DNA of 64,000 bases from Thalia democratica (GCA_965202585.1 OZ241826.1:77748001-77812000), one strand, 5' to 3'; shown: positions 4,950-29,694, numbered from the stretch's first letter. Made by a program: numbers and translations. The notes: a model not told the origin generated them from the letters alone.

Positions 4950-5337
4950 CCTGGATGGGAATTAAACTTAAGGAATTGATCAGGTGAGATTTGATTTGGT
5001 CGGTATTTAATTCGTGATGGAATTGTGCGGGTTGGATTTGATTTAGGTGGGATTTGATCGGGTGGGATTTGATCGGGTGGGAATTGATTAAGGTAGGAAT
5101 TAATTCGGGTGGGATTTGATCGGGTGGGAATTGATTCGGGTGGGAATTGATCGGGTGGGATTTGATTCGGGTGGGAAATGATCGGATGGGATTTGATTCG
5201 GGTGGGAATCGATCCGGGTGGGAATTGATCGGGTGGGATTCGATCGGGTTGGAATTGATTCGGGTGGGATTTGATACGGGTGGGATTTGATTCGGGTGGG
5301 AATCGAGTGGGTGGGAATTGAGCGCGGGTGGGAAATG
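4950..5337 (-). repeat. Right terminal array (ATCGGGTGGGATTTG / ATTCGGGTGGGAATTG units)
   Basis: Tandem units visible directly; ends in GAGCGCGGGTGGGAAATG, the inverse of CAGTTCCAACCCGCGCAC at 1816. Confidence 0.9.
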
Positions 5338-7005: not shown

Positions 7006-9560
7006 TTAATAATTTTTTTCATCTTTCGCTTGATTCTTTTCAAGTTCTTTTAGCTAAAAGTTAAAATTATTTATTTTTATATAAAAGCTAAACTTTTTAG
7101 TTCTAGCATTGAAAACTTATTTTTTATAAACTGAAAAGTATAAGAGTATAAGTACTCTTTGCTTAAAAATGTAAATTTAAAACAAAATAAAAGTTTACCT
7201 TGTTTTCGTACTTATCAGATAATTTTCGGAATACTTCAACAAAGTCTTCATATTTCATTGCCATCTAAAAGAACAAACAGATAATGAAAAGTTGTTATAG
7301 TTATGAATTATTAAAAAAAAAATTTTTTTTATATATTTCGAATTTAAATAGATTAATTTTATGGATTGTGGATTAATTAAAGTACATATGGTTTGTTTAC
7401 TAATATAAACATACATTAGGATATGAAATGTTTATAGTAGTTTTAACCTTTTTTTGTATAAGTTTTTATGTAAATAATTAATAAACAACAATTTAATGTT
7501 GTTTTAGCTCATAACATTACTTCAATTGTAAACAACTAACAAAATGTCTTTGTTCAACGTTTTTCTGTCTTCTTATTTCACTAACATAGGTAACCTAATA
7601 TTTTCAAAACTGTTGAACTGTAGTCTTGGACTGAATTAAGTTATTTTTAAGCGTTTATTTGTCATTATTATAGTTTTATTTTTAACAATTTGAACTTAAA
7701 AAAAACTTAAGATCTAATTTTCCATGAGAAAAGAAAAAATTGTTAAAAAAATAAACCTGTTCCAACTCGCTTTCGAGAATCCTTATTCTTTCTTCTTTCG
7801 ACTGGACCAAATCTTGAAGTCGCAGGTATAGAATCGCGTACTCACGTCGAATATCTTCTGATTCCTGATATTTTTTTTTTTTCGAAGTTGAAAACTTTAG
7901 AGTTATATGAAATAATAGTAAGTTTTTTTTTTGTTATTTTATACATAAATACCCTAAGGAAGTAACAAAAAGGTTTAAATTTCGTACTAAAGTAGGTTTT
8001 TAGTAAAATTTGATATATTTTTTTAAATAGCTATTTTTTGATACATATCAATATAATACCTAATTAAATTATAGTTTTTTTTAAAATAGATAAATTATAT
8101 AAAACATATTATGCTTGTTTACAACTACTAAACTTTTTTCAAAATCTTAAAATATAAAAAAACTTTGTTTGTTATCTGTTATTTTTTTAATTTGTTTTTT
8201 AAGTTAAACTGAAAACTAACAGTGTCATTTAATTTAAAATTTAAACATTATTATACAACAATCTAAGCTTACTTTACTAATAAAAGCACAAACTACTTTT
8301 TTTTTATCTGCTATAGACTAAGTTTGCTTATAATAGAAGTTAGTATTGAAGTAGTTTTTCTCGTTTACTAATTAAATTTAAGGCCGCTTATCATTTTATG
8401 AACAGTTATTTTTTAATAAGCTAGACTTCATTTATATGAATAAAGCTAGGTTACTCGCACATGAACTTTTATATTGAACAAATATCTTTATTAAGCAGTT
8501 CAAGCACTAACTAAGGTTTTAAGACGCTTTTCTTCCTCGATATACCTTTTATTTGTTAAATCATCTCTCTTTATTCTGGAGTTAATTTCTTCAGTTTGCA
8601 TTGCTACATCCTATTTGTCAAGTAAAAGTTTTACTGAGTTGAAATAAACGTTCTTTAAGAGCAAAATTAAAGTAAACTTAGAACATCAATTACACGCTTT
8701 TTACGCTTGATTATTAATAAAATATTTCTTTTTTATAAAGGTTATTAAAGTGTTTAGAGTTTTAATCAACCTGGTACTATTTCTATTAGGTTATAAAAAA
8801 AGTCTGTTATTTTTTACGTGATTTAAGAAATTCAAAACAAAGTAAATTTTGTAAAAGACAAACTCAATCAAAATAAAACTTACTTGAAATTTCAAAATTG
8901 TGGTTTGAGTTGCAACGTATTTCTCTGGTGGTGTTTTTAATTCTGTTTGAGAACTGACATTAGCGATTCTATCTTCAGTTGGTACGCGTAGGTAAATGGA
9001 TTTCTGTAAAGTAATTTAATGATTTCATTTTTATTATTGTTTTTATTTGAAAACACTCAATAATAGTTTTTTTTTTGACTTAAACATATTAAGATTTTAC
9101 TTTTAAATTTTGTATGAACAAAAGCAAACTTTCTGGTGGTACAGTATTGTCATCGCTAGAAGGGTCACTGCAAAAAACATGAAAAGAACGGTAATCAGTG
9201 CCGTCAAATAGTTTTCGGTAGGCTTATTAGCTTTACAAATAGAGTGCCCATCTAACTCGAAGGACGCATCATACATAATAGGTTTTATGTAAGGTGCGTA
9301 AGGCCTTATAACGTAAAAGTGTGAAGAGTTATCAGACGAGTATTTGATGACATTATAGTTGTTTTTTAAAAGTTTATCCTCGCATCGCATTAGATACTTT
9401 TGAAGTGTGCCTTTTCTGAAAACTTCCTCATCTGCTAGTTTACCGTTGTTTTTTTGACAAGAATTTTTGTCTTCTTTAAGGTTTTGGGTTTTTTCATCAA
9501 CAATAAAATACTTGTTTTTGTCATCATCAAAAAACTCTTGACATGTAGTTGGAAATGAGG
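7006..9560 (-). CDS. Single-pass membrane receptor, copy A: degenerate CTLD-like ectodomain, TM, cytoplasmic QT motifs and coiled coil (5' exon not located)
   Basis: GT-AG exons complement(9130-9560, 8884-9003, 8512-8610, 7757-7864, 7541-7594, 7199-7264, 7006-7053) join in frame: ..SFPTTCQEFF..KYFIV..SCQKNNGKLA..ICK..YLTALITVLFMFFAVTLLAMTILYHQK|KSIYLRV..VSSQTE..VATQTT..FQ|DVAMQTE..|ESEDIRREY..ELEQ|VTYVSEIRRQKNVEQRHF|MAMKYEDF..|LKELEKNQAKDEKNY*. Copy B has the same exon structure and phases. Confidence 0.85.
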
Positions 9561-10369
9561 CTATAAAAAGTTAAGTTAATTAGAAGTAAAAAATTAATTT
9601 GCAGAAGTTATATCTTGATATTTACGAGTTAGGTTTAAAAATACTAAAGCATACACTTAGATATGTAAAAACACTTGTTTGTTTGTTTGTAGCTAACTTG
9701 TTTATTGGTTTTAACACTTTTACTTAAACATTAAGTATAGATTTTGTTTCTATGTGATTATCCTTATAGTTTATAAAAGTATAATTGAGCTAAAGTAACA
9801 AAACTTCCTACAAATTAAATTAAACAAAACATATCAAGTAATAATTATATATGTACCTGATAAAAATAAATGTTTTCTTTAATTATTTATTAAAGTAAAT
9901 TAAAAAAATTATTTAATATAGATAGTTTAAACATACTTACTTATCGACTATTCTGTAATAGTTTATATTGAAAAGTTTAATATTAGTAAATTAGTCATAA
10001 AGTGTTTTTACATTATTCTTTTTTAAGTTCTGACATTTATTAACACTCCACTAATATCAGTTTATTTTAATTTATAAAAAAACTTTAGCAATGATAATCC
10101 AGCTTAAATATATTTAAAAAAACCTGAAGGCCTGCACTTTCCTGTAAGTGTAAGGAAAAAGTACCAAAAGTTTTTTCTAAATATAAACATCTGAAAAATA
10201 AATAGCTAAAATAAAATTATTGTAGCAGGCACATCGAAAACAACAGCTTGTATACTTTAGGATGCCTTGACGCAGTAACGTTACATTATACATACATTAT
10301 AGTTCCACATTAAAAAAGACCATTAACCAGCTTTTATTGTTTCTAGATTGAAAAATATACAAGTTTAAA

Positions 10370-11074
10370 ATGAAATTACAAATGGAAAAAAATTGCCCAA
10401 TTAGTATTACCACAAACAGTGGCACTTACACATTCTACGATAAAAGAGTAGAAAAATGCGAAGCAGAACAGATATGTCAGAGCAAAGGGCAGATACTAGC
10501 TCCTATTACAAACATGGAGGACCGCAAAGCCATTGAAAAGCTAGCTAGTCAAAAGTGTGGAATTTTTCTTGACCATTATGCGTCATCTTATCATGTTGGA
10601 CTAGAAATTAAAAAGTGTGGAAACAAAGTCACTAAAATATTTTCGAATGGGGTTGCATACAACAAAACTTTGCATGACAGGTTTTACCACTTTAATTCGG
10701 CAAAAGGGTACGAGCACTGTCTTACTGCATTGTGGGTGCCAAACGGTGGAGTTAAAGCACCTATTCCTGTAATTGGTAAATTCAATAAATGTAAAGATTA
10801 TCATGAAAGATTTATTTGTTTGGATCCAGCAAAACCTGACAATAACTCAACTGTCACTGAAGAAGCTCGTCATCTTAAAAGGTCTAAAAGAAGTGTAAAG
10901 TTTAGCAGGGAAAATGATTTGTTAGGCCAACAAAACTTTTATTTTGTGTCTCAAATGTTTGGTGTTTGTTTTTTAGCTATAGTTTGTTGTTTTTTGCTTT
11001 TAGCAAATAGAAAGCTTAAAAAAAGAAACAACTTTTTGGAAATGAAAACTAAATTAGATACAAACGGATGTTAA
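10370..11074 (+). CDS. C-type-lectin-like membrane protein, copy A (CTLD, RSKR site, C-terminal TM, basic tail), 234 aa
   Basis: CTLD hallmarks: EAEQICQSKGQILAPI, YHVGL (WIGL-equivalent), RFIC. Eight Cys are shared with copy B; sequons NKT and NST; KRSKR precedes TM MFGVCFLAIVCCFLLLA, then NRKLKKR. An acceptor (TTTCTAG, 10346) and an in-frame stop precede the ATG. Confidence 0.85.
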   Translation: MKLQMEKNCPISITTNSGTYTFYDKRVEKCEAEQICQSKGQILAPITNMEDRKAIEKLASQKCGIFLDHYASSYHVGLEIKKCGNKVTKIFSNGVAYNKTLHDRFYHFNSAKGYEHCLTALWVPNGGVKAPIPVIGKFNKCKDYHERFICLDPAKPDNNSTVTEEARHLKRSKRSVKFSRENDLLGQQNFYFVSQMFGVCFLAIVCCFLLLANRKLKKRNNFLEMKTKLDTNGC

Positions 11075-12049
11075 CTTTGTATTGTTTTAGAAAACGCATC
11101 TAAATTAGTTCCAAGCTTTCTACAATATACTATATAAACCCATTCGTTTACTTCTAATAATTTTACCTTTGACTACAGTTCTTTTAAGTTTACCTAATAA
11201 GCGATACGTAAAAGACTTAAAACAACTTTATACAGAACGTAGAATATTTATTTTTCATTGTATAAGTTTTATATTTAGTTTGACACACTATTACAACATG
11301 AGTTAATAATTTCGCCTTTTAAAATAAACTTCTTTTTTTTCAAAAATGTTACTTAGTACCTTGATGTTTGGTTTAAAACTTGTTATCAAAATAACCTTAA
11401 GTTAAATAATATTTTATCTAAAAAAAATCTTTTAAAGGTCTGATAGTTAGTTTAAGTGTTCTAAGTTTTGTTAAAACTACACTTTTTGCTAAACAGAAGT
11501 TTATGTTTTCATAAAATTATAGAAAATATATGAGCAGTACATTTGAATATTTATGGCAAAACACTTTAAAATATTTTTTTTTTATTTAGTTCGACTGTAA
11601 GTCACCTGTAATTTAAAATGTCTTGAAAGCCTTTATTCTTACATTGTTTTGAAATTGTTATCGACTAGAACATTTTTGTTATTGAGAAATAAGTTATGGA
11701 ATGAAAACAAACAAAAAAATTTAAACTCAAATGAATTTACTGTTTTAAAAAAAAAAATTTACTATTGAAATAACAGTCTTCTTTTTAAAATCGAGAAAGT
11801 TTAAATCGAGTTTTTAAAATACTTAATTTAAGGCTGGACACAAATAACTTTAAGAAACAAAATGTTTTGATTGTAGCATTTTTTTAACTTTTTTTATTGT
11901 TATAAATTATAAAAAATAAATAATTAGTAGATCATAATCAAAACTTTTTTACTTAAAGGAAAATTTTAATTCAAAACCTTTATTTTCTTCAAAACATAAG
12001 TATTTTAAGTTTTTCCGCACAAAATGTTTCGTCTAAAAGAAAAGTTTTA

Positions 12050-12405
12050 GGACAAGTAGTTTTAATCGACAGTGACAGTGTGCTTATTTTTGTGTAGAGC
12101 ATCAGCGTGTAGGTTTAGAAACTCTGTGAAAAACGTATAACATTTTAAAGCAAACACATTAATAAACCAACAAGACAAGCTTGTATACTGTTTTTAAATA
12201 ATTTCACACTATTGAGAACCCAATTGTCAATAGCTTTTCGGTCTTTCATGTTATTATCAATAGAAGTTATTATTTGCCTTATGCTCTGAATTATATGCTC
12301 TGCTTGACATTTTTTTGGTCTTTGCTCGTAAAAAGTAAAAGTACCACTTTTTGTGTCACTTAATTTTATTCGTAGACTTAATTCTATTTTCAAGAAACAG
12401 TTCAT
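12050..12405 (-). pseudogene. Inverted, decayed paralog of the CTLD membrane gene (copy A)
   Basis: SGTFTFYEQRPKKCQAEHIIQSIRQIITSIDNNMKDRKAID aligns with SGTYTFYDKRVEKCEAEQICQSKGQILAPITNMEDRKAIE. A key Cys is lost and a stop follows after 86 codons. Confidence 0.8.
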
Positions 12406-14775
12406 CGCAAATACAGTTTAAAACATTAAAAACTTAATAATGGTAAAATTGGTAACAGCTAAAATACAGTTTTGAAGCGAAAATACCAAAATTTTTGAGT
12501 AACATATAGATTGTAAAAGATTAAAACATTCAAAAACAATTTAGACAGCTCATTTGTAATTTTACGAGCTGAGCGGTTGAAAAAGTAAATAATTCTGTAA
12601 AGAGAAAGTATAGCGATTTTACTACATTCTTACATCACAAAAACATGTGTTTTTAAAGTATTTATAAAGTTCACAATTAAAAAACAACATACCTTTTTTT
12701 TTAAATATAAATATATCTTTAAAATTATTAGCCTTTAATGCTTCATTTGAATTTTATTATTAATAACGCCTTTTTAAGTTCATCTTGTTAAATGTTTTCA
12801 TAATAAAGTTTTTGTAAAAAAGGTATCAAAATTCAAACAACTTTACAAAAGTATCATACTTCAGATAAAGTTCTTAATTTTTAAATCTACATACACATCT
12901 ACTTTTTCTCATTTGCAAGCCAAATGGTAACAAAAAAAACATGCTTATAACTTTCAATACTATTTTTTATTTAAAAACAGACTAAAATTTTTCTTTGTAT
13001 AAATTTAATTTGACAAGAATTTTTTTTTTTAATTATGTTTGTGTTGACGAAATTTAAACTATTGTAAAACTGCACTCTATCACAACACAATCATGTGCAT
13101 TTAAACATTTGGCACTTGATACTAAGTGAAGCTTAACCATTTTTCAAATTTTGACAAAAGTATTAAATTAAACAATATAGATGTAACTTTTTTTTCATTT
13201 TAGCTACTTTTCAATAAAATAAACAATATAAAAACAACTCATTTACAAAACATTTTTTTCAATCAAATACTATGCTGTTTTTAAGAAAATTAACAAGCCC
13301 TATTAACAAGTAAAAAAAAAACATAACAAACAGATAGCATTAATTAAAATCCTTTGTAGAATGATAAATCAAAAAATAGGCTAGAAAATTTTAGCTTACC
13401 ATATCACTACAACTAAACTTACAAAAATTTCTCATGGTCGTTATATATTTATTTTTTTTTTGAACAACCGATGATATAAGTATAATAATTTTTTTAACAA
13501 AAACAAACATACAGCTGGCTGTAACTTTAGTTTTTTTTCTTATCTACTTTCTTTGGTTAAGACAATTGAGTATTTATATATACACATATATCTTAAGTAA
13601 AAAATAAAATTAAAACTTAAAACAGTGACTTGCTTTAACAAAAATACTAAAAACTATTTATAAAATAAAAACTTGAATACAATACAGTAGTCCGGAAAGA
13701 ATGAAAAACAAGTAATATAAGCTGATAAATATTTGTTTTTAAGGCCATTGAAAAACAACTTAAAAACTGTGTCAAAGTTACTTCTTAAAATAAAAAACAA
13801 CTCAAGATTTAAACTTTGACCGAAATTTACCAAGAAAAGGGTAATGCAAATTAGAAATTAAGAATATAGTTTTGATTTTAAATTTGATTATAGAGTTTTT
13901 TAAGCTTACGTTATTATAAAATTTTAAAGCTTATTTTTAGAAAAACAAGTTTTATTGTGATCGTAAGTTGCTTTAGAGTTTATAATCTTAACCTTATGCA
14001 AGAAAAACCAAGCAAATTTTATCAAAGGTTTTTCTAAAACATCCATGCTTAATTTCATTGAATATCTTACTTAAATCTATAGCGTTATATGCAGTATTTT
14101 AAAACAGTTAGTTTATGTTTAAAACATTTTATTGGTAAAAGTATTTTTTTATACACAGTAATCTGCCGAGTAACTTTGCAACGTTATAGTTTCGGTTTTA
14201 AGAGAAAAAAATATTGTACTCAACATTTTAAGCTGAGTTTAAAACTGCTACAAATCTTTGCACCTGACATATATCTTCGCTTTTATCACAAATTTTTTCA
14301 CAAAATAAATTTGTATTTCTAAACTTTTGAACTAATCTTTTTCGATATAACGATTAAGTATAAATAATTAAGTAGTTACAATTTTTCTTAACTTAAATTA
14401 TAAGTTTTTCTTTATTTTAATGTTGAAATTGTTAAAATCACAAATATTTTAACTCACAAGACTTTAAAGTTTAACTTAAAAGCCAAGCTTTTAGTAATTG
14501 TTTTCGTATAAATATAAATACAATATTTAATAAACGCTTGTTTATATAAACAAAAGTCATGAAATTAGATTTTGTATTTAATATTTATCTAATGTTTTAC
14601 AGGTAGAAACCATTTAGTTTGCTTAGCCAAGTAAAACTTGCTTTCATTGAAAACTTTAAAGTGAGAATTTAAATGTATTATTACGTCACTATACTAAGCC
14701 TTCAAGTACTGAACTTAGTAAAACGGAAAGTTTTAGTTTAAGTATTAGAGTGGCGCTTATATTCAAAGTCTCAAT

Positions 14776-15063
14776 ATGGCAGATGAATGTAAAAAAGCTA
14801 CTCAGAAAAAGTTGAAGCGAAAGTACACGAGAAAAGCTCCGACGAACAAGGCGAAAAGACAAAGGAAGCCGAAAAAAGCAGTGAAACTTGAAGTTAAAAA
14901 ATCACAAGTTTTTGATGAGCCTGTTGAAGACCCCCTTCCAAATGTCGCTTTCTTTTTGAAACCGTTTGATGTTTACGAAGACGGACTTTCATGGAGGATC
15001 AGTCCCTGGATTCTGAAGACTATCAACTCGCAGAAAACAAACAAAGTAAATTCTGATTTTTAA
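14776..15063 (+). CDS. Small Lys/Arg-rich orphan protein (95 aa, or a first exon ending at 15045), copy A
   Basis: The ORF is conserved in copy B with 4 substitutions over the first 90 codons, all synonymous. A possible donor AAA|GTAAAT lies at 15046. No family recognised. Confidence 0.7.
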   Translation: MADECKKATQKKLKRKYTRKAPTNKAKRQRKPKKAVKLEVKKSQVFDEPVEDPLPNVAFFLKPFDVYEDGLSWRISPWILKTINSQKTNKVNSDF

Positions 15064-16515
15064 ACATTTATTGAAGTGTTGCTATTTTTTTTTGTTCTTT
15101 CTTTTTGTTTTAAATAAACCAGTCTCAACTTGAAGCTTTATAACTTTAATTTTTATTTTTAAAAAGATACATAAAATACTTCAACAATTTTCGTTATTTT
15201 ATTAGCACTGAAGAAAGTTGCTGTTGTATAGTTATTTTACCTATTTTGTATCAATAAAATGATAATTTAAAGAAGTTTTAAAACAAAGCAGTAGTCGTCA
15301 ATTTTATAAAAATTGTGCACACAAAGTTACTGTGAAATAAATTCTGTGCACACTAAACTATAAAATGGACAAAGTATTGTTACAAAGCACTACGTTTAAT
15401 GTTATAACTAGATATTTTTACTAGAAAAAGACAACACAAACGTTATTAAGTTTTTTTTTTTTAACTTCACTAAATTTCCATGCACACTAATTCTAGTGAT
15501 CATAGGTGCACACCGTGAAGAATACTGTATTTATGTATTTAAAGTTTATTAGATTATTCACTAAAGGTTAAAAGTAAGTCCAGACTCACATTTTTTTATT
15601 AAAGAATAAACTAAAAACTTTGAAAACATAAACTTTGATAAAAATAGGTGAAAGTTTAAAAACATAAAGGTAAATATAACAGTAAGTGAGTTTAATGGGA
15701 CAAAAATTTATAAAAAAATTATACAAAATAACTAGTGTTTTAATGAAATAAGGCTTTCTTTTCACTTTCTAAATAGAAAACTCAGTGTTTTATCTTTTAT
15801 TCACTGTTACATCAGATATTGTTTGTTGTGCTTGAGAAGAATTAAAAAAAGAAGTCAATGTAGTTAAAAATAAAGCAGTTAGATGTTTCATTATACTTAG
15901 GTGAAACTTAATAAACCTGAAAATTAAAAAATAAATAGTGTTCAAATACGAGCTAGATGTTTATGTATAAACCTAAAAATTAAATATGTGGTTGAAACAG
16001 ATCTAACAAAGGAATAAATTCAAGATGAAGATTTACGTATTAAAAACTATTTATTTAAAAGTACAGACATTACTAAGTTTCACCGCAAAAGGATTTTTAA
16101 ACTGTGATTTTTATTTTAACAGAACTGTTTTTAGACAACTAACTTTTTACTATTTGATTCAAGTGTTGTTTTTTGTATGTATAAAGTACGTAAGCTTAAA
16201 ACAAAATACTATAAGAGAAACTACATATTACCAAGATTTAAAGATAAATGTTTTTTTAGAATCTAGCTTGTTAGGATAGTAAACTGTGGACTAAAACGCC
16301 CAATAAACTATAAGATTAGGTCCATCTTGGTCGGTTTAGGTTGTTCTGAGAGATGTTTTATTGAGAGTACATTTATATAAACAAAATTTAATTAGGTTGC
16401 GTGGGTTTGTCATTTTCATATGTCAAAGGATTATGCCTACGACTACTTTTTATTTAAGGACAGTTCTTATTAAGTTTGTTAATAAAATTCTTATTACTTT
16501 GGGTTTAGTCTAGAT

Positions 16516-19500
16516 CAGGGGTCGGCAAACTGCGGCCCGCGAGCACGTTATTTTTTTGAATGGAATGCGGCCCGCGAAGGAAAATTTTGTGGCCCGCGAG
16601 CATGTAAATGTGGCCCGCTCAGCAAAAATATATAATCAAGTTAATTTTTTTTCGGTAAGTTGATTTAATTTGATTAGTTTGGTTTTAAGTCTCTGTTTAA
16701 CATTTTAAATTATTAGAAGAAATTACTGCTTTAGTAATTTAGTTTAATAAAGTTTGAAAATGTAAAAAAGACAGATAAACATTCTAACAGGATATTTTTC
16801 TCAGTTTCATAATAACTTCTTTTTTACAACAGCAAGTAATTATCTGAAAAAAGAGTGTAAAGAGTGCTTCAATATAATAAGTTAGCTATATTACACCTAT
16901 TTGTTAAATAAACTAAATGCAAATGTTTTCTATTTTGTACAAAAATAATGCACAGTAATTAACTAAAGTGTCGTTTCTTTATAGCTTAGATATTCTTTTT
17001 AAATTTTTTTTATACCTAAGTTTCTTTTATAGATGTTTTATTTGTAAATTTTATATTTTAGTGTAAAAATTTAAAACAACATAGTTATAAGAAATAAGGT
17101 TTATTTGATTTTTGTTTTGACACATTTTAATTTTTAGGATACTTTCTCTACACTTTAAATTAATTTCTATGCAAACCAACTTAAAAAAATGCTCATATTT
17201 TAAACCACTTTTTATTTAATACTTTAGTTAGTTTAAGTTTAGTTTATGCATAATTTTCTAACATTGTTGTTTCTACATGTAGTATCTAAATTTGTACAGA
17301 CACATTTAAATTAACATATATGACATAAATTAATATAGTTTTTGTTAGGTATACATTTTTCATTTTTCAAACATCTTATTGTAAAACTAAATTAATTTTT
17401 ATGCCTTGCATATCATTACACACAATTGCTGTTTTTTTGAGCTACCTATTTAATATAAACTAGATTTAAGGATAGTAAATTTATTAAGTTTGTACATTGT
17501 AAATCAAAATAGTTTAAATTTAAGCAAATAAACAACTAAACATTGACACACACTTAAATTATCACTATTTGAAGACTTCAAATCTCAGGCCAACTAAGTC
17601 ATTTTATAAGTTTTTCTATAGAATTACATTTGTTTACAAAAATATCAGGAATGTTTTTGTTGACTCAGGCTGGCTTTTTTGCTTGAAAGAGTGGCAAATT
17701 AAACTTATGATGTATGATTTGCTCAATCCACAGTGTTAGTTTTAGTTATAATATATGTTAAATTTTAAGTCTTGCAGCTGATAAAATTCTAAAAGTTATT
17801 AATATTATTGTTAACATTTGAATGTGAACAATCAGTGTTGCCAAAAAACTTGAATCCCGGAAAAGCTTTGAATTTGAAAATTTATGCTTAAAAATTCTGG
17901 AGAAAACTTTGAATTTGAGAATTTTTGAAAAAACCTAGAATTTCAAACAATTTTTACATGCAAAGTAATGAAATTTCGGTTTGACACAAAAAATTTAGCA
18001 AATTAAAATTTTTTTATTATAAAGTATATTGAAGTAGCTTAACAGTATTTTTTAATATTGATATATTTTTTCAGACATTTTTTAAACTTTAATTAAACTT
18101 TATACTAAAAATAAAAGAAAGAATTGTACTTATAAAAACTTTGTATTGGTTCATTGCACCTGTACTTGTAAAATTTCACCGATTGTGTGCTTCGCGTTGG
18201 AACTAAACCAAAAATTCTACTAAAATGTCAAAGTTAGTAAAAACATCTCTAATAAAAATTATTAGATGAGAAATAGTTTTTCTATCAGTGCTCTCATGTT
18301 AACAGATTGATTAAAGTCCTAATTTGATTTATGCGACTTTATAACCTTATGCATTTCCTGAACACGACTTCTTGTTGTCGTTGAAGAAATAAACAAAAGT
18401 TTTTCATTACCGCCAACATAAATTCTTTAAAAAGTTTTCAATTATAAACGGTATCTCATTTTAAGTAATAAATTTTGCTACTTAATAACTTGCCTTAACG
18501 ATTTTTTTCTGATCATTCTGTAGTTACTGAAGATAATCATGTGCTTTGTTGTAACTGACTTTGGTGATTTGTTTTTTTTTATCGTTTCTCGCAATAACTC
18601 CTAACTAACGTTTTTTTTTTTTTTTTTGTAGCTCGTCTTATATTTTACAATTACTATTTTTAAATGCAATATTCTTATTGCAGATAAAGAATTGCTATAA
18701 TGCCTTATAAAAAGTTAGTCTTTCTACTTCGCTAATGACTAAATAAAGTTTTATACTTTTCTTAAATTTATTTAAGAAACTTAATTGTCTATTCCAGCTG
18801 ACTTATATATTTTTGGCATGTAATTTATTTACTCTTAACAACCTTCTTTATTTTTTTATGTTAAGAACTTGATTTTAACTGGGTTGCTACACAAAAAGGC
18901 AATTTTAAAAGCCCTAAAAACTCAGGTTTGTGTTAAACTTTTATTTCAAACACTTCAAAGAAATCTTTTAATTCTCAGAATAGTTTTTATGACTGTAGTG
19001 TAGTAAACTTATTGTAATTTTTTCTTGTTTTCTTACACTTTTTGATAATGATGATATTTTAACTAGATATTTAAGCTTTATTAGCAACTATTTATTAGCT
19101 TTTTCAACTTTTAATAAACTTAGGCTGGTTTGATACAACTCTGATATTTTGCTTTAAAAGTGACAACCATGTAAAAGACTAATCACTAATAAGACATTTT
19201 ATTAAAGTATTCTAGAATTAATGTTAAAGAATATGTTCTAGCTTTTTGGAATATAGGTATTAATTTTATTAAGTTAAGTAATTACTAATTTTTTTAATGA
19301 ATGTAAACTGTTTCACACGCAAACACTTTTTTTGAAGTAAATGTTCTGAGAAATATGAAAAAAGGGTTGATTATATAACAATATATAAAAGTAACCAAAA
19401 AATTGTCTTTCAAGTTTGGTTTTTATAGAGAGTTAGGTTGTAAGTGAAATTACATCAGTTTAACTTATTAAGTGCTTATGAAAGTACATAGTTTATTAAC

Positions 19501-19740
19501 ACTTAAGTATGTTAGTCAATGTAAATTCTATTCTATCAAATATTAATTTGAATAGGCATTCTATATACACATAAAAGTAATTTAAAATAATAAGTTGAAC
19601 AAAAGTAAAAAATTTTTCTAGTGTAATTAAAACTAAAACAAAAATATTATTCAAGTGTCATTAAAACTAAAATTGCGGCCCGCGAAGACTTTTGAATTTT
19701 GAAATTTGGCCCGCGACCACCAATTGCCTGCCGACCCCTG
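16516..19740 (-). mobile_element. hAT (Charlie/SPIN-like) DNA transposon, 3225 bp, specific to copy A
   Basis: TIR CAGGGGTCGGCA at both ends, GCGGCCCGCG subterminal repeats, perfect 8-bp TSD GTCTAGAT (16508-16515, 19741-19748). Copy B has a single GTCTAGAT (empty site) at about 51740. Confidence 0.95.
16830..18620 (-). pseudogene. Heavily decayed hAT transposase inside the element
   Basis: Minus-strand fragments FKEFMLAVMKNFC (about 18400), HESTDRKTISHLIIFIRDVFTNFDILVEFL plus LVPTRST (18300-18190), QIIHHKFNL (about 17710) and LTYYIEALFTL (about 16870). They resemble Charlie-family motifs DESTD..QL.IFIRGV, CIIHQENL and STYLCEQLFS. Many stops and frameshifts. Confidence 0.7.
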
Positions 19741-20722
19741 GTCTAGATTAAGGGTGGGCAACGCACTCAACGCATTTTAGCTTACTAACATCTTGCATAG
19801 ATCAAAATGAGATTTAAAATAACAAATAGTTTAAAATATGCCCTTAATAAACTACTATAAAATACAGTCGTGTTTTCTTTTTTAAAAAAAACCTTGACTG
19901 AGCTTTAAGTAGAAAACAGGGTAAAATTTTGGCAGGTGTGCAAGCTTTCTTTTGCAATGCATCTACATTATCCAAAAAAAAACAATATTTGTTTTCAAAT
20001 TTGTTGCTTATCTAAAACTAGATTAAAAAAGCTTTACTATACAAGTTAACTAAAACAATCAATGACTGTTTTACTTTAAACGGTTGTATTAATTCAACTT
20101 CAAAAGCAATTTAATTGGTGAAAACTTTTCGTGTTATTTTTAAATTCTCAAAGATAATATTTAAGTTATAATCATAACTCCATAAAAATTACTTTTACAA
20201 ACCAAATTGTGCACTAGACTTAATAATACTGAAATTTAGTAGTTGTATGACCTGTTTTAGTATTTACTAAAACCATTTATTCCTCTAAAGTTCTTTTTAT
20301 GTTGTATGTATCTTCTAGTTTAAACTCTTAACTTATTTTTGTGTAAGTGTATATGTTTTTAGGATTTAACTTCAAACAACAATGTGCTTAAATTGTTTTC
20401 TGTGTTCACAACTTGCTTTAAAGTTTCTTCCTTTCACCTTGAAAAGCTTAGTTCTAAGAAAAAGCTTATTTAATAAAAAATTAAGCACTACAATTATAAT
20501 TCATACCTATTACACGAGGTTTATTATTCAATAACATAAACAAAAAATTAAGTAAAAAGTTATTTTTATTTAACTTGTAGCCAAGTCTTTATCGATATTA
20601 AAAGTGTAAAAACAATTAATAAAGCGAATTATAATAATTATTTATATGTAACTAATAACTGTTTTTTTGTAGACGTTTTAACCAGGCCTTAAAAAAATAT
20701 AACTAGAATTCTGTTATTCAAT

Positions 20723-21047
20723 ATGGGTTGCCAATGGTTTTTTTGAAATTTTTACCTATTTACTCTAAATTTCTTCAAAGTTTTCTATAGAACAAGTTTT
20801 TTCGTCCATTTTTAGTTTAAACCTCAAGTAAAAAACTGTCTTAAAAAGTATAACAACATTGAACAGATACTGTAAAGCTACCTTAAATGTGTGTTGTTTT
20901 TTTTTAATAAATAAAAATTTCAAAATGATAGATTTTTTGTATCTAGTTTATTACTTTGCATGTAAAAACACTTTAAAACTTTTCTTTTTTCACTTCTCAA
21001 ACTCAAGGTTTTTTTTTACCTAAATTGTGAAATTCCAGGCAACCCTG
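20723..21047. mobile_element. Short non-autonomous DNA element (GGGTTGCC...GGCAACCCTG ends), present in both copies (B about 52722-53047)
   Basis: Short inverted termini; related AAAACCTGGAATT-type sequence also occurs near 17834, 22700-23030 and 31123. TSD not established. Confidence 0.45.
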
Positions 21048-22445
21048 ATCAGTGCAAGTTTTTTTTTCTAATTTTGCTATAAATTAAAAATACATCAGGC
21101 TGCTGGTATATATAAGTGAATGTGAAAAAAAAAATCCAATCTCAGACAAAAACTGTTTAGGGATAGAGTTCTTTTAAAACAAGTCAACTAAAATAAAACT
21201 TGATAAGAAAATAACTTTAAAACAGCTTTACTAAATTCTACTAATCTAATACTCAGTAATGTTTCATCAACTTTGTTTTGCGCATTTAAATATTAATGAA
21301 GCTTAATATTCAATAGCTTAGTTATAAGTATTTAAACTAGTATAGAAGAATACTTTAGTAAATTAAATATTTTTGTGTAACTAAGTTGTTTGAATAACTT
21401 AATTATAACTTTGACCAAGTGTCAAATAATTTGATTGTAATCAGTGAAAATCTTTACAACAAAGCTGTAAAAAAGAAATATACTTTAAATAAGTTCGTTT
21501 AAAGAGAAAAAATACAACTGAACTCATTACTGATTTTCAAAAAAGAAAATACCCAAGACGCAACCATAATATTAGCATAGAATACTTTATTCTGTGAAAT
21601 CAAAATTCTACCTAAATAAACGAAAAATAATAAATCTTAAGTTAATACAATTATATTTTCATTTTAATCTAAGTCTTTATAACCTAATTTCTCTGTAATC
21701 AGGTTTTGCTTTTTTATTTATGCTAATATTCAAATTTGCTTAACAGCATCACTTGATGTTGCTTACAAAGGGCCATACGGTCTAGTAATTTGATAAATAG
21801 TTTGTACTTTTAACTTATTTAGTATATATATGTTTTTTTTTAAAGCTTACTGTTGCTTTTGGACTAACAGTGATGTAATTGTTTGAATAATATCTTTCAA
21901 AAAGTTATATAAAATATTTTAAGATATATTATTTTTAAGGAAAATAAGCAAGCAAAAATTAACATAACAAAATTTAAGATTTCATAAAGTTTAAAACCTT
22001 TAAAGTTAAAATATCCAATAAAAAAACAAGCAAAAGCTCTTTTTCTAATTTAAAAAATTGTTTTAACAGTTAGTTTTACATCATTAAGTTAATAAAAAAA
22101 AATTAAGAGACTTAAAATTGAAAAAAAAAAAAAACTTTAAGCTGTTTACATTTAAAGATCATTTGTATATTTTATCATAATAATGCAGTTACTTTATCCT
22201 CATTAATGAAATCTCATATTCTTATGTATTTAAAACATTATTCAATTACGTTTTAAATAACCAAAACAAAAAGTTCATTCAGTTCTTTAAAATAAAGCAT
22301 AATAATAAAAATATTAATTAAAAACAGCCTTTAAAAAAGCCGTGCAAAAAACAGATTTTCTTTGAATATGGCCAATTTTGTTAGTAAATGATAAAAGTTC
22401 ATTTTCCAACCTAAATGACACACAATTAAAAAAACACTTTATTTA

Positions 22446-25400
22446 TTAATTTCCTTCTTCCACGTCCATCATGATTTGGTCGAGGGCGGAATCTTCAAAG
22501 TCGTCCTGGGGTGCTTGTTGCTTAGCAACCCTGGTGGGTTTGGTTGGCATGGAAGCCTGCCAATCGATGTTGATGTCTTCCTTCTTCGAACTTTTCTTCA
22601 TCTCGCGAGGTTTTCCTCCTGAAAATTTTAATAACTTTCCTTAAATAATACATTACAAGTTTCAATTTCAAATCTCAAAAATTTTTTAAAACAAAAAGTT
22701 ATTAATTCAGGGTTCCGAAAGGTTTTTTGATAACTTTTTCCAAGATATCCGAATTTATTCTAGGTTTTTAAAAGTACATGTTATTTTGTCCATATTTAGT
22801 ACAAAGTTAAAATTAAGGTAAAAAACTGCTTTCAATAGTATAACAACATTGAAAAGATTCTGCAAAGCTACTAGTGTTTTATGATAAACAAAAATTCTAA
22901 ATACTTTTTTATGTTTGTGATAGATTTTTGGAATCAAATTAAAATTTCATTACTTACATGTAAAAGTTGTTTAAAATTCTAGGTATTTTTTTGGTTTTTT
23001 TTTTTTTGCGTAATTTGTAAAATTCTAGGTTCATTGCAAACCCTTTTAATTTTAAGTTACTAAAAAAAAACAAATATTTGTGAAAACATAATAATAAGTT
23101 ATAAATTATTAAAACTAATAACCCTAACAGACTATCAATATAATTTTATTAATTTCGTACAAATATGTTTGTATGTACTAAGTTATCACCTTTTGTATCA
23201 AGCAAATAAGTTTAAACTTATTAATGAGTACTTTATAATATTAACTTTGTATAATTTTTTGTTTGAATATAAATGTATTTTATTTATTTTATCTTCTTCG
23301 TGTCCCGTTTAAGTGGCTCAGGTTTTGATGCTTGAGTCCAACATTGCACAATAAACAATATAATGATAATAATATAATTAAGTTTAAAAATATATTGAAA
23401 TGAAACAAACCAGTTAGAATTCTTCTACTTTCATCAAAATATTGATTAGGATGAGTTACTTGGAACGCCGTGTGGTCAGACATCTGTAAAAAATAAATCA
23501 TTTTGAGATTTGTTTTGAAGCATCAAAAAATATAATAATAAGTAAAGTATTAAACAAACAAACTATAAAATTAATTCAAGTATAGAAAAAAAAGAATGAC
23601 AGTGAAATATTTTTAGGTTTTTTTAACGAAGTAGAGGTTCAAAAATAAATGATTATAATATTTCAAAAAAACGTTCTAAACAAATACAACAACAAACCCC
23701 GTGAGTGACAGCGAAATACTTCTGACAAGCTATCTGGTAGTGGTGCTTGCTTATCAATTGTACTATTTGCTCAATTGCGTCTGTGGGGCACTTGTACGAG
23801 GATAGCCGTTGTCTCAACACCTGTTCGCTACAGTGCTTGAACGGGCAGCCTGGTGTGTTTGTATTACATATAAAAAATATACGGATTGGATATCTGTCTC
23901 AGCTGCTTTAATTACTTTGAGAAACAGACCTTGCGACTTGAAAGGTATTTTAAGACTGCGAGTTTTTTGGTAGCGAGAAAAAAAGAATCATACTGGGGTT
24001 TACTGACAACGGTGTAAAATTGAAAAAACGAAGGGTTGTAAAAGAAGCCTCTTGTTATAACAACCACTCGGTAACAAGTAGAAACTAAATATACAAGTTG
24101 CAGAAATGCCTTGCGACGCAAAAATACAACTTAAAACTTGTTTCATAGATTGAGGAAGGATATTTATGACATAAATTTCATTTTACAAAACTTATATATT
24201 TGCTCTTTAAATACTACTACAAACAGACATATTTTACAATATTATCGTTCTTTAATTTCTTTTTAAACTACTACTTGTTATTGAAAACGTAAAAAATAAT
24301 AATTAAGTACAGATCTTCTTTTTTTTTTTTGAAATAGATATTACTGTTTTGAATTTTAAATCTTGAATAAGCTACAATGTGAAAAAAAAAAATTTAACAA
24401 TTGTGTTACAACAATACCCCATATTAAAACGTAAATAATAGTTATATTGTGTGCAAATTATCAAAGTGTTAACCGTGGTGTTCCTGGCTGGATTGGGGCG
24501 CATTGGTGGTAATTATCTTCATGCAGCTGAAAGGCGAATAGTTCACTCTTTTGCCCTCCTTTCCGTAATTGTGACGTATGTTGTAAGAATACTGCTTCTC
24601 AAACTGTTCATTGGTGTTTAATATATCTTAAATAAATATAAATACTATATGAAGTATAGTGCTCACATTATTCTTACATTTATAAAAGAAAAAAAAAAAC
24701 ATCAATTTCATTTTGACTTTATTTAAAGATAATAAAAACTTCATAACAATCTTCTCAAACTGTTCATTGGTGTTTATTCTTATTTAATTTACATTACGGT
24801 TAAATTTAGTAAAGTAGTAGTTTATCTAGGAATTATGAACATTATTTTCTAAGTTATGTTCTAATTAGTGATATACCGGATCCACTTTTAAGGATCCGGC
24901 CGGCTCCGGATTCTAAATTTTTTATGTAGTTTAAAAAGAGAACAAATTTATAAAATTTAGTTATTATAATACCATTAATCAGTAAAAACTGTTTAATACA
25001 AACATTTTGTTAAAAAAAACACAAAGTCTTTAAAAGTTTTTCTTTAAATAGTACAAATTCAAACCTTGTCGAGGTCTATCACTTTGGTGAATTCCCTCCT
25101 CCAAAACTTCAGCGCCGACTCAAGCGTGACGCCTATACCCTTCAAATAGAGGGAGTACTGCTGCCTGCCCTGGTACTTGAGGTGGTGGTCCCTCGTCAGG
25201 TTCTGGTGCAGGTTCCGCATGCACAGCGGGTACGACGTTTTCGACAACTGTGGGTTTTGATGAAAGCATTAACGCTGGTATCAAAGGTGTTTGTTGTGAT
25301 TTAATAAAATAAACTTATAGATACTTACAATTAAAAGCGATTATATATTTTTAACTTAATTTAGAAAAAGTATAAAATTAAGAAAAAAATGGTTACATAA

Positions 25401-26555
25401 ATGGATAATCGTCCACTTGGCGAAATTTAAACAATAATGGTCACCCGCTTTGTGAGTTGCGTGAAATTATTTTAAATTAACTGTTTAATTATTGCTAAGC
25501 ATTAAAAGTGGGTAGAAATGTTTTTTTTTTCACTTGAGGTTCTACCTAAAAACTAGATGTTTTCGATAACTGTAAATTGTGTTTGAAATATTGAATTGGT
25601 AAAAAACGTCCTTGTGGTTAGGAACAGACTTGTTAAAATGCTAATTATTACTATGGTAATTCAGCAATGAAGCGTATAAAATTTGGTTTGTTTTGAGTTA
25701 TTAATTTCACGCTCGAGTAAACAAAGCAGAGCTTTTTAACATGTCTGGTTAGGAAGCAAACTTGTAATTACTTGCCATTAAAGATGAGTTTGAATGTTTA
25801 CTTGAGGTTTAATATAAAAAGAAAACTAAATGTAAAAATTATACAATAGTAATATCTAAGTGTTTGTGCTGATTTCAAAGAACTAAACTTGTAACCACTT
25901 TCCATTTTGTAATTTTTTTTAGTACAATATATTGCAATATGATACATAGTCTATTATTTTTTATGTTTCCATACATATACGAACTAATTAAAACATAGTA
26001 CAAAACAAAAAAAAAACCTTATCGAGATCATCGATGTTAACATTTCCCTTGTTTTTATCAGTATCGTATGCGTTTGACACCGCTTCCTTGCTGAAAGACT
26101 TCAGTATCGGAACTATCCGGTTTCCTTCCTCTAATTGGGGCAGTGCGTGGAAAGATAACTGTAACGAGAACTTATGTGATTTTCAATTACACTTTTAAAA
26201 GTTTACTTTAATATGTAACAAGCAGTTGTTTGAGTTAGGCTTAAATCAACTAAAAGTTTTAGTCAATAGATTAGCTGACTTAAGTTTAAAAAAGTTCAGT
26301 TCCTGTTTTCATGAATACAAAAATTTTACACCGCTTAATTAAACTAAATTAAAATTTCTTGACTCAGCCAGGACTGGTGGTAAATTTTTTAGCTGTAATG
26401 AGTGTGAAAAAAGCTAAACTTTTAGTGATTTCAGGTCCAAATAACTTTAGTGCACACATTACATATAAACTTACCGTGAGCCACTTAGACAGGAAGCCTC
26501 TGTATTTAGCGCTAATTATGTTTACAAAGTTCTTTTGAGGCACGTATGCTTGCCC
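22446..26555 (-). CDS. PRIM2: DNA primase large subunit, 3' seven exons, copy A (no upstream exons before the duplication junction)
   Basis: Exons complement(26475-26555, 26018-26158, 25065-25247, 24474-24603, 23698-23849, 23411-23483, 22446-22618) splice in frame: GQAYVP..|LSFHALP..|[39 protein letters not shown]..|[33 protein letters not shown]|[15 protein letters not shown]..|..[14 protein letters not shown]... All four 4Fe-4S Cys (PLCM, FSCM, GCPF, IACQ) are present. Confidence 0.93.
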
Positions 26556-27332
26556 CTGTTAGAAAATAATTTATTAAAAAAATTTATAAGTAAATCAAAC
26601 ACAAAAATATCAAAAATGGTTCTATTTTCTTTTTAAAATATTTAGCATGCAAAATTTATAACTTGTTGTTGGACTATTTTCAAGTATTTGTAAAATAAAA
26701 GGTAAAAATTTTATCAAACTTAAACATTTACTAAAAAAATAAACTAGAAAACTAGATATATAACACTAAAGAAACATTTAAATCTAAATTTATTAATACA
26801 TTTTCTTAAAAAAATAATTCAACTTGTTACTCAAGTTTTTTAGCTTGAAAAAAAAAAAACAAGCTATTTATTTTTCTAATTTTAACTTATAATAATATTG
26901 AAACCATATAAGTATCAATAATGACAAAAAAAGCTTTAATTTACCTATAAAAATTATATAATAATTTAATTCAAACGTGTATTAAAAAACATATAACAAA
27001 TAATTTTGTTACTTAAGTTCAATGAAATTGATTTATCATAAACAAAGTATATATAAATGAACATATAAAAAATATTAAGTGAATTTTTATCTATCAAATA
27101 TTAGCTTTATTAACTTTATTATCAGCTTTATGAACTTTTCGTATAATTTATTTTATTTTAGTCAAAAATAACTTAACAAACTCTAATAAAAATGTAGTTT
27201 TATACGAGAAGAACTAATAATAAAACAAATAACGCAATATAGAAATAACAATACTTTATACAGTTTTCATTAAAAAAATATTTTTTCAATAAACATCTTA
27301 CTAGATAAATTTTGTTTTAATAAAAATAAAAG

Positions 27333-27445
27333 GAAGGTGTTTGAGCTAATCAGTATATTTTCTATCCATATTTTGTAGGGTCATGAATTAAAACAAGTCA
27401 TCACTTCAGCTCGAATGTGGCATGAGTGGGATTCGAGCCCACTTC
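27333..27445 (-). mobile_element. 5'-truncated tRNA-derived SINE remnant at the duplication junction
   Basis: Body nearly identical to 62460-62553; retains only a T-arm/B-box hairpin GTGGG-CTCGAAT-CCCAC (minus strand). Confidence 0.6.
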
Positions 27446-27888
27446 GAAATTAACTTTTGACATTTATATGTTCTAAACTAAGGGTGGGCAAAGCCCAGGA
27501 GCTTAATCCTGCTATTTAATAGAAATCTTTGGCTTGCAAGGTATTTTAAGTTCGCAAACATATTTTTTTTAAACATGAGCTTTTGTTCAAAAAATTGTTA
27601 TAAAATGTTTTATTTATTTAGTTTTTGTACACAGCAGAGCCTTTCAATTTATTATTACGTTACAAATTTACTTTTAAATACTTTCTACTTCTGTAAGCAC
27701 ACGTTTATGTGATCAGATTTTTTATACAAAATCTTTTTACACTTTTTCCAGTGCTGCTGCACAAAAAAAACATTTAAGGTAAATCTGGCCGGCCAATTGA
27801 AAAGGCTGCCGACCCTCTCTTGTAGATTTTGTAATTTAATAAACCTAAATAAGTTCCCTAATTTAATTTACCTTTAAACTTCAAGGTA

Positions 27889-29694
27889 ATGAAGAGCAAA
27901 CCCCACTGCAACCAGCTCTTCCTGACCGGCCTGCAGTGGCCCAACATGTCGGGGCTGCAAATGTGGGTGAAGTTCATCGACCGCATCATCGAGGCGACCC
28001 ACCTCGACAACCAGGTCACCATATACGGGCCCAAGGGCGTCGAAGAGGTGGTCAGGAGGAGGCTGGAGCCCATGTTCTCAAAGACTCGAAAGGACAAGAT
28101 CTGGCCGCACGTGCTGTTCGTGGAAGTGGCGGACGGGCAAAAGGTGAAAAGCTCCCAAGTGACCGTGACCGCTCACGAGCTTTTAAAGGATGAAAACTTC
28201 ATGTACGAGGTCAACTGCGAGCTTCAAAAGGGCGGAGAAACGCGTAGAGCGAACATGTTTATTGCTGAAATGTCAGATACAAACCAAATGGAATCGATCA
28301 AAGACAAGTTGTCTGATATACCATGCAACCCAGATGACTCAAATTTTTTTGTGCAACAAGCTAACACAGGCGGAATTTATAATTTTTCTAATCAGCTACC
28401 CAACTGGCATGTTCTAACTCCCAATGACACCAACAAAGAAGGGAAAGTTGACGGTTGGGCTGTAAAGAACCTGATCAGGAGCGCATGCAACAAAATTTCC
28501 CCTGGTTTTTTCCCGCTGCATGGCAGAAATAATGTTTTAGACCAAAACCTGCTTGTTGATAATAATAATTTTTTTCAGCTCAGCGATTTTACGAACTACC
28601 TAGTAACCGGCACTTACGGTTTGGGCACAAACAACATTCATTCGGCCGAAAAATACACCAAAGTTTACAGAGACTTGAAAGAAAAGGTGGAGGCGGAAGG
28701 TGTGAGCGCGGATCGCACAAAAAGCAACTGCGACTTTCCAAAACTGACCGTGCTGGGGTGCGGGGACGGGAACGACAACTTCAGGAGTTGCAGCGCCTAC
28801 CTGTTGAAAACAACCGAGAACAGGTCCATGCTGATCGACTGCGGGCCGGGCACGCTTGAGGGCATGCTCAACCACTACGGGCGGGAAAGGTTCCACAAAG
28901 TTCTGAGCACGATCAAAGTCGTTTACATAACGCACAAGCACGCGGACCACGTGGGCGGGCTGGGCTCTCTGATCCACCACGTGTTGAAAACGAACGAGCG
29001 CGCGGAGGAGAAAATACTTTTGATCGGTCCGCCGTGGCTGCACACGCTCGTCCCCACCCAGGTGCCCACGGAGGAGTTCAGCAAAAAGTTCAGGCTGCTC
29101 AGCTTCGGCTTCCAACCGACCCACAACTGCCACAAGCTCGAAGCCGCCCTGGACGTCAGGAGCTTCAGGTGCGTGCTGGTGGAGCACGGGTGCCTGACCA
29201 AGGGCCTCGTCCTCGAAACCAACCGCGGCAACTTCAAGTTCGCCTTCTCCTCGGACACCCTCCCCATGAGCGGCCAGCTGATAAAGCACGGCATGGACGC
29301 CGACCTCCTCGTCCACGAGTGCACGTTCCTGGACCCGATGGCGGCCAAGTTCAAGATGCACTCGGACATGCAGGGCGCCGTGGACACCGCCAACAGGATG
29401 CGCGCCAAGAGCCTCATGCTCAACCACCTCAGCAGCCAGTTCCCCATGTACCCGCTGGTGGACAGGGACATTGATTTGCGCGGTTACCGGGGCAACGTGG
29501 TGGTCGCCATGGACAACTTGGAGGTGGGGCTGGGCGAGGTGGGCCGGTTGGCTCTGCTGCGCCCCCGCATGGAGAAAGTGTTCGGGGCCAGCATCGAGAA
29601 GTTTTACAGGAGGGCGGAGAAGAAGGAGTGGGTGAAGAAGTCGAAGAGCAAGAAGTTGAGCGACACTTTCAAGTTTGTCACCGGGACAGAGTGA
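27889..29694 (+). CDS. Long-form RNase Z (ELAC2/Trz1-like) metallo-beta-lactamase-fold nuclease, atypical, probably lacking 5' exon(s); 601 aa uninterrupted
   Basis: C-domain motifs: LIDCGPGT (I), THKHADH (II, HxHxDH), VEHG (III), SSDT (IV), HECT (HEAT), HSD (HST), NHLSSQFP (V). N-domain pseudo-motif LFLTGLQWPNMSGL..VTIYGP. An acceptor-like TTCAAG at 27885 opens in frame (GTA ATG). No symbol given because orthology versus a divergent paralog is unresolved. Confidence 0.9.
   Translation: MKSKPHCNQLFLTGLQWPNMSGLQMWVKFIDRIIEATHLDNQVTIYGPKGVEEVVRRRLEPMFSKTRKDKIWPHVLFVEVADGQKVKSSQVTVTAHELLKDENFMYEVNCELQKGGETRRANMFIAEMSDTNQMESIKDKLSDIPCNPDDSNFFVQQANTGGIYNFSNQLPNWHVLTPNDTNKEGKVDGWAVKNLIRSACNKISPGFFPLHGRNNVLDQNLLVDNNNFFQLSDFTNYLVTGTYGLGTNNIHSAEKYTKVYRDLKEKVEAEGVSADRTKSNCDFPKLTVLGCGDGNDNFRSCSAYLLKTTENRSMLIDCGPGTLEGMLNHYGRERFHKVLSTIKVVYITHKHADHVGGLGSLIHHVLKTNERAEEKILLIGPPWLHTLVPTQVPTEEFSKKFRLLSFGFQPTHNCHKLEAALDVRSFRCVLVEHGCLTKGLVLETNRGNFKFAFSSDTLPMSGQLIKHGMDADLLVHECTFLDPMAAKFKMHSDMQGAVDTANRMRAKSLMLNHLSSQFPMYPLVDRDIDLRGYRGNVVVAMDNLEVGLGEVGRLALLRPRMEKVFGASIEKFYRRAEKKEWVKKSKSKKLSDTFKFVTGTE

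Follow-up and report, generated by a model that had tools for sequence, protein, structure and literature searches.

The divergence between two tandem copies of a gene-bearing block in the salp Thalia democratica is a stepwise mosaic, which is probably the product of nested tandem duplications of old and more recent age, a chimeric copy made by recombination and subsequent gene conversion. The block was analyzed in a 64,000-nt stretch of assembly sequence (C1:77748001-77812000), referred to here as the window, from the genome (801 Mb, 26% G+C) of this free-swimming tunicate, together with 90 kb of upstream and 40 kb of downstream sequence fetched around it (194 kb in all). The two copies within the window are called A and B. 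Each begins with a unit carrying a pair of lectin-like genes (L_A and L_B) and ends with a right part, R (R_A in copy A), that includes sequence of the PRIM2 gene; a spacer, S, separates the two copies. A third, partial copy, C, lies upstream of the window and consists of another copy of the spacer segment, S', followed by a lectin-pair unit, L_C, and the block between L_C and L_A is called J. Copies were paired by self-BLAST and by chained MAFFT (FFT-NS-2) alignment of collinear blocks. Mismatch fractions were obtained from 19,439 ungapped columns, with transposon indels left out of the counts, by binomial change-point segmentation followed by pooling. The assembly sequence is free of N bases throughout the window and for 90 kb to each side of it.

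Copy A (44-27448) is collinear with copy B (32867-62575) as a single direct duplication in both self-BLAST and MAFFT, with the 5.4-kb spacer (27447-32866) between them. The two copies do not diverge uniformly (chi2 = 2217, df 37, 500-column bins), and segmentation instead yields an old class on the lectin side, a transitional class next to it, mid-age and young classes in three segments each, and an old-level island within PRIM2 (Table 1). The three mid-age segments are mutually homogeneous (chi2 1.70, df 2, P = 0.43); the second of them (15129-19973) comprises 1565 aligned columns once the 3.2-kb transposon carried by A is left out. The three young tracts differ from one another in divergence (P = 0.0007), and the longest run of A-B identity in the right part measures 329 bp, compared with a maximum of 170 in permutations (n = 1000). 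Some edges of the mosaic are razor-sharp, as at 23900/55887, where A-B identity breaks off, and there is no smooth or monotonic gradient.

An earlier first-pass annotation had described the block as a steep gradient, on the premise that a single duplication should leave uniform divergence. That premise is sound, and the data do need more than one event; divergence also stayed non-uniform with transposon indels excluded, the repeat-masking check that had been set beforehand as a possible refutation. The heavy divergence noted over 1-12 kb, even outside exons, is borne out by mismatch fractions of 0.32-0.35 (0.25 over 10.9-12.2 kb), as is the intermediate character of 12-14 kb (0.12 over 12224-13474). 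The near-identity described for 14-27.4 kb applies to the 58% of columns that fall in the 1.5-4% class, but not to the remainder, in which 36% of columns are ~11% diverged and 4% stand at the level of the lectin side. The gradient was thus correctly seen as non-uniform divergence, but its shape is that of steps and not of a monotonic slope.

The big step near 12 kb is a switch in genealogy and not the edge of a homogenized zone. The S' segment lies at C1:77703446-77708958, 71,994 bp upstream of S, and is followed by L_C on the same gap-free C1 sequence as A and B; the homology of C to the other two copies stops at A 14589 / B 49854. Across A 6-12 kb, an alignment of all three copies has 1302 sites that unite B with C, compared with 262 and 271 that favor the remaining pairings, and the Kimura two-parameter (K2P) distance over this interval is ~0.12 for B-C, with the A-B and A-C distances equal to each other at 0.2-0.67. 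Between 12500 and 13000, copy A is nearest to C (K2P 0.072, vs 0.146 for A-B and 0.116 for B-C; 41 sites vs 10 and 22). The relationship is star-like over 13-14 kb, where all three copies are within 0.05-0.14 of one another, and from 14 kb onward A and B are the nearest pair. Copy B is a chimera, its left side being a mid-age copy of C and its right side a mid-age copy of the right part of A. The apparent gradient arises because the A-B alignment sets old paralogues against each other left of ~12.2 kb but mid-age duplicates beyond that point.

Mosaics are also present in the S-S' and B-C comparisons. B and C, including the S-S' part, differ at a mismatch fraction of 0.128 over 30719-39212 (8.5 kb), with patches that range from 0.01 to 0.24 and include young ones of 0.01-0.05; S and S' differ at 0.029 over 27447-30718 and at 0.128 beyond. 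A 0.8-kb stretch of B (40213-41023), located beside a 234-codon open reading frame (ORF) of the lectin side, is 24% diverged from C, with surroundings at ~0.09-0.13. It adjoins patches of 1-4% B-C divergence and could be a misalignment or an extra layer of exchange. Genome-wide, the DNA relatives of L_A are found only in B and C, at 67-74% identity, which rules out the import of L_A from a distant paralogue, and the right part R is found only in A and B.

Fast evolution is common among lectin-like recognition genes, and genes of this type lie in the left part of the block. The mosaic could accordingly be read as a single duplication of uniform age in which the lectin side merely diverged faster, through diversifying selection or a mutation hotspot, but this is extremely improbable. 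Across this lectin unit the B-C difference is only ~0.12, as in the neighboring spacer, so the lectin side evolves at an ordinary rate. The noncoding DNA of the lectin side is also as diverged between A and B as its exons are, or more so, and the right part alone contains three divergence classes with sharp edges.

The right end of the A-B homology falls in the T-arm of a tRNA-derived short interspersed element (SINE) inside a PRIM2 intron. From this point A runs on as S, and the first base of S-S' homology lies within ~5 bp of the A/S junction at 27448. No shared overlap of the sequences flanking 27448 was found in the junction alignment. A hybrid SINE produced by SINE-SINE homologous exchange was considered as the origin of the junction and is not supported, as A continues as spacer after the T-arm and no SINE is present to the left of S'. 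The T-arm of A (27424-27446) differs from its counterpart in B (62551-62573) yet is self-complementary (GTGGG...CCCAC vs GCAGG...CCTGC, read on the tRNA strand), and the acceptor strand next to it is identical in A and B; this could reflect replacement from another SINE copy. At the left edge, homology of A to B and C begins at ~30-44, immediately after the end of a multicopy element.

The genes on either side of the junction are complete only at the outer edges of the duplication. Spacer S contains an intact ORF of 601 codons (27889-29694, + strand) that encodes an RNase-Z-like protein of the metallo-beta-lactamase fold (Pfam PF12706, PF00753), and the equivalent ORF in S' (C1:77703708-77705687, window -44293 to -42314) is also intact. 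The ORF has a G+C content of 48%, against 26% for the genome, and its two copies differ at 33 nt (16 synonymous-like, 17 nonsynonymous-like), with 97% of amino acids shared. The transcript-sized ENA protein P0001 is equidistant from the two, being 91% identical to both the S and the S' protein, and the closest homologues of the S protein are encoded on contigs of 2.3-2.5 kb, whose length leaves little flanking sequence of use; no record of an exact match to the S protein was found in public assemblies. Sequencing-run evidence was drawn from short-read contigs (Logan) placed on window positions 24600-30500. In run X8, which shows splicing, an RNA contig has a 5' exon spliced onto the acceptor at 27884-27886, just before the RNase-Z-like ATG. 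The 194 kb contain this 5' exon a single time, 180 bp to the left of S' and with a GT donor, and S lacks it; wherever S and S' differ, the RNA letters are all of the S' type. For PRIM2, matches to PF04104 are confined genome-wide to A and B (exon matches at 23686-23856 and 55673-55843, respectively), and a spliced PRIM2 RNA contig carries the letter of B at four of five A/B sites (25149, 26062, 26069 and 26129) and that of A at 25167. The complete, expressed copies are the outer genes, RNase-Z-like in S' and PRIM2 in B, and position 27448 therefore joins two headless genes, a PRIM2 without its 5' part and an RNase-Z-like gene without exon 1. This novel end-to-start junction of headless genes is the signature of one tandem duplication reaching from RNase-Z intron 1 to a PRIM2 intron. 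Pfam scans of ten ORFs found no other genes at 12-24 kb, and this stretch is taken as noncoding except for the PRIM2 exons.

These observations can be arranged in a history of four steps. In the first, an old tandem duplication (K ~0.47) of the lectin-pair unit (A 44-14589) would have given rise to L_C and L_A, whose right ends (12.5-14.6 kb) would have stayed similar or become so by exchange. A tandem origin is suggested by the position of J, without which the end of L_C would abut the start of L_A. Block J (window -26012 to ~20) is 26 kb long and is made up of two old tandem units, 61-81% identical, of the multicopy element that ends just before L_A; the block as a whole starts and ends with the same 350-400-bp piece. 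Its element is abundant at C1:27.2-28.4 Mb, where copies are densely clustered, and part of J has a G+C content of 42-44% and looks coding. In the second step, of mid age (K ~0.12), the entire S'-L_C-J-L_A-R_A stretch (72.0 kb today), from intron 1 of the RNase-Z-like gene to the SINE in the PRIM2 intron, would have been duplicated in tandem, so that two promoterless copies met at 27448. A single mid-age event fits because the A-B mid-age segments are homogeneous (0.120, 0.104 and 0.109) and match the S-S'/B-C value of 0.128. In the third step, the second copy (35.1 kb today) would have lost or never received ~37 kb, comprising the right of L_C, J and the left of L_A, either by homologous recombination between the lectin units within 12.5-14.6 kb or by template switching, leaving the chimeric copy B. 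This history accounts for the edge of S' at the junction, the position of J, the chimeric genealogy of B and the equal mid-age divergence of A-B and S-S'/B-C.

In the last and youngest step (0.015-0.037), at least two interlocus gene-conversion events would have homogenized three tracts of uninterrupted homology, sparing the ends of the block and the surroundings of the older transposon in A. The tracts have discrete edges, stand at 0.015-0.037 against a background of 0.11 and hold a run of identity beyond that seen in permutations, in copies that are paralogous and reside on one gap-free stretch of C1; the three-copy genealogy also changes along the alignment, from B+C to A+C to A+B. Homology-dependent exchange fits because the mid-age layer survives at the ends of homology and around A's transposon, which is 95-97% identical to its relatives. 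S-S' over 27447-30718 (0.029) and the B-C patches of 0.01-0.05 behave in the same way. Interlocus gene conversion has been reported to be negligible below ~88% identity (PMC3790853), and the lectin side, at 65-75% identity, lies far below this limit, in keeping with its never having been homogenized.

Another account of the same tracts, raised in the first-pass annotation, is one old A-S-B tandem duplication whose PRIM2 side was later homogenized, here by long and short conversions; C would then be a later dispersed copy of S and the left of B. Part of it stands, as young tracts with sharp edges do exist and make up 58% of right-part columns, and an intron of PRIM2 at old-level divergence (0.35), its homology fixed by flanking exons, is the kind of unconverted relic that this account predicts. 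The main cause of the A-B contrast is nonetheless the recombinant structure of B. Under the single old duplication the left breakpoint of C would fall within ~5 bp of the existing A/S junction only by chance, the landing site of C would need to coincide with the far edge of J, and the equal mid-age divergence of A-B and B-C/S-S' would be left as a coincidence. It also makes S the parental segment, yet the copy that is expressed, and that has the 5' exon upstream of it, is S'. This alternative is accordingly considered unlikely.

The PRIM2 intron in question (23901-24448) is bracketed by the same exons in A and B, and both versions of it are unique in the genome. Their homology is genuine, with a local alignment score of 76 against 17.5 +/- 2.6 for dinucleotide shuffles, and their 73.5% identity fits that of the old noncoding DNA of the lectin side (65-76%), unlike that of the mid-age layer (89-91%). 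Independent transposon insertions were ruled out as the source of the island, as both versions are unique and align far above shuffles. The adjoining conserved exon (24449-24620) is 96% identical, with ~17 bp of conserved flank on each side, and the next intron has been restructured, measuring 415 bp in A vs 3.35 kb in B. A 26-mer from the PRIM2 exon edge and acceptor is present twice in A (24595-24620 and 24751-24776, 156 bp apart) and once in B (56483-56508).

Several points weigh against the history of nested duplications, recombination and conversion proposed above. The divergence of the island (0.35, K ~0.49) is not predicted for a right part of mid age and needs an extra assumption: the duplication may have captured a deep allele, the intron may turn over unusually fast, or R may itself descend from an older duplication. 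Within B, recombination is located only to 12.5-14.0 kb, since all three copies are similar there, and the similarity of A and C at 12.5-14.6 kb itself requires an exchange event. Neither reads nor contigs span 27448, where short-read contigs break at the SINE, so that the junction rests on the assembly; the junction pattern was likewise absent from public metagenome contigs in two scans. Finally, in X5, the likely source run, the word depth of A-specific contigs is 42-45, about half that of B-type and S contigs (75-95), although these depths are ambiguous.

In this same run, B-type contigs over the near-identical stretch of A have depths of 72-98 and the letter of B wins at 8/8 distinguishing sites, and the S contigs (75-95) show S and S' letters mixed. 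The pattern is compatible with A being present on one haplotype only, as in a real duplication that may be heterozygous in the sequenced animal, but the depths are noisy (adjacent X7 contigs over shared sequence stand at 50 and 81) and uncalibrated by a single-copy flank. In contigs of other runs, every "other letter" over 25055-26165 is the letter of B. Polymorphic conversion was considered for these letters and rejected, as they are paralogue letters (B on A, S' on S) from paralogue contigs or popped bubbles.

If the duplication were real, recent and heterozygous, the S-B second copy would be a young polymorphism of one chromosome, produced by unequal exchange between very different homologues, and the mosaic would largely record allelic coalescence times that predate the duplication, in place of later gene conversion. 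Besides the depths and letters in X5, this view draws on the young tracts, whose divergence (1.5-4%) is near the 2-3% by which the window differs from contigs of other individuals, and on the island, for which a deep allele would account; this PRIM2 intron, together with part of the mosaic, would in that case represent deep allelic lineages preserved on a single chromosome. Most of the two copies, however, differ by 11-13%, several times the between-individual value, which was obtained under a 95% filter that biases the comparison. We regard such a polymorphism as distinctly improbable; if true, allelic lineages at this locus would have to be very deep.

A further possibility is that A and B, or B and C, are uncollapsed haplotypes that the assembler placed one after the other, the lectin pair being the site of an ancient balanced polymorphism, as the first-pass annotation had also proposed. 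Retained haplotigs are known to trouble salp assemblies (PMC10686999), the A-specific contigs are at about half depth, and false duplications of this kind in heterozygous marine invertebrates resemble the present case in having collinear copies tens of kb apart that differ by a few per cent over long stretches. Here, however, the junction is a clean, overlap-free switch in a SINE T-arm, with no gap or contig end at the join, and the headless-to-headless genes that meet there are those of a true tandem duplication. The full depth of B-type words in X5 (72-98) is not what would be expected if A and B were both half-depth alleles. Three lectin units occur on one gap-free sequence, with L_A as far from L_C as from L_B and the near relative of L_B being L_C (~0.12), which indicates that A and B are paralogues and not alleles on the lectin side, where the units differ by 34%. 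Each copy also carries private transposons of different ages. Misjoined haplotypes are therefore very improbable, and the proposal is not supported.

These private insertions are distributed over both copies. Copy A alone carries a transposon at 1803-5346, with many genome copies at 89-90%, and the 3.2-kb transposon at 16529-19740, which is 95-97% identical to many genome copies and absent from B. An A-private miniature element of ~112 bp (25634-25745) sits in a 98.5% identical tract and has 98-99% copies on C4, indicating a very recent insertion. Copy B alone carries a complete element of 4,630 bp (44876-49505, opposite A 14242) that has a 99% identical full-length copy at C4:21349133-21353761. 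This element must post-date young tract 1, inside which it is inserted; several more copies of the family are found at 94-95%, and it appears to have moved very recently. Two further insertions are private to B, one at 56536-59886, with a 1-kb repeat and a palindromic element inside it, and one at 61339-61790; two B-private palindromic (self-inverted) elements, at 56590-57182 and 61333-61709, have arm identities of 82-86%.

Table 1. Divergence classes and features of the duplicated block (window positions; K, Tajima-Nei distance).
Class or feature	Position	Strand	A-B mismatch	Remarks
Old class	A 368-6043; 7116-10810		0.32; 0.35 (pooled 0.339)	K 0.47
Transitional class	A 10896-12223		0.248	K 0.31
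Mid-age class	A 12224-13474; 15129-19973; 26166-27448		0.120; 0.104; 0.109	K 0.12
Young class	A 13475-15128; 19974-23900; 25042-26165		0.037; 0.023; 0.015	K 0.026
Island	A 23976-24448		0.349	adjoining PRIM2 exon 24449-24620, 0.04
Left part of A (L_A)	44-12223			old paralogy layer vs B 32867-42800 and vs C
Mid-age segment 1	12224-13474			zone of A/B/C convergence and genealogy switch
Young tract 1 (conversion-like)	13475-15128			C homology stops inside, at 14589
Mid-age segment 2	15129-19973			around A-only 3.2-kb transposon
Young tract 2 (conversion-like)	19974-23900			3.9 kb; intergenic DNA and 3' PRIM2 exons (minus strand)
Old-level island in PRIM2 fragment	23901-25054			intron, conserved exon, restructured intron
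Young tract 3 (conversion-like)	25055-26165			holds A-only 112-bp miniature element
Mid-age segment 3	26166-27448			to end of A; stops within T-arm of tRNA-derived SINE
Spacer S	27447-32866	+		second copy of 5.4-kb segment; first copy is S'
Copy B, chimeric	32867-62575			C-like to ~43-44.6 kb, A-like beyond; complete expressed PRIM2 (minus), exiting the duplication rightward
SINE, tRNA-like head	62545-62617	-		right breakpoint of duplication; Rfam tRNA match 31.5 bits

Interlocus gene conversion and concerted evolution have been catalogued in human segmental duplications (PMC3790853, PMC4132178, PMC10172114), and the present locus resembles these in its paralogous blocks tens of kb apart with tracts of high identity, in genealogy switches among at least three copies, in exchange above ~88% identity and in a truncated gene copy kept like its parent. 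It is unlike them in that its largest step is the breakpoint of a chimeric unit built from two older paralogues, that donor and acceptor are unpolarized, and that the host is an AT-rich salp and not a primate. Tandem duplication followed by deletion through non-allelic homologous recombination likewise places complete genes outermost, with truncated copies meeting at a novel junction, and generates a hybrid unit by recombination between diverged direct repeats; here, too, one breakpoint lies in a SINE. The junction differs in not being a hybrid SINE and looks non-homologous or microhomology-mediated, and a single replicative template-switching event could yield the same end product. Nested segmental duplication that leaves a hybrid unit and is accompanied by interlocus conversion is an ordinary, well-described process, and nothing at this locus is new in kind.

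The locus illustrates how one self-alignment can mislead, as what looks like a gradient may be the breakpoint of a recombinant copy whose two halves are each closest to a different copy, in one case a copy that lies beyond the window. Complete, expressed outer genes and two headless copies at the junction also offer a test for a real tandem duplication that is independent of read depth. For the salp itself, the truncated PRIM2 and RNase-Z-like copies are documented as having been kept similar to their parents, and the argument that this lectin pair carries an ancient balanced polymorphism, akin to self-recognition, falls away.

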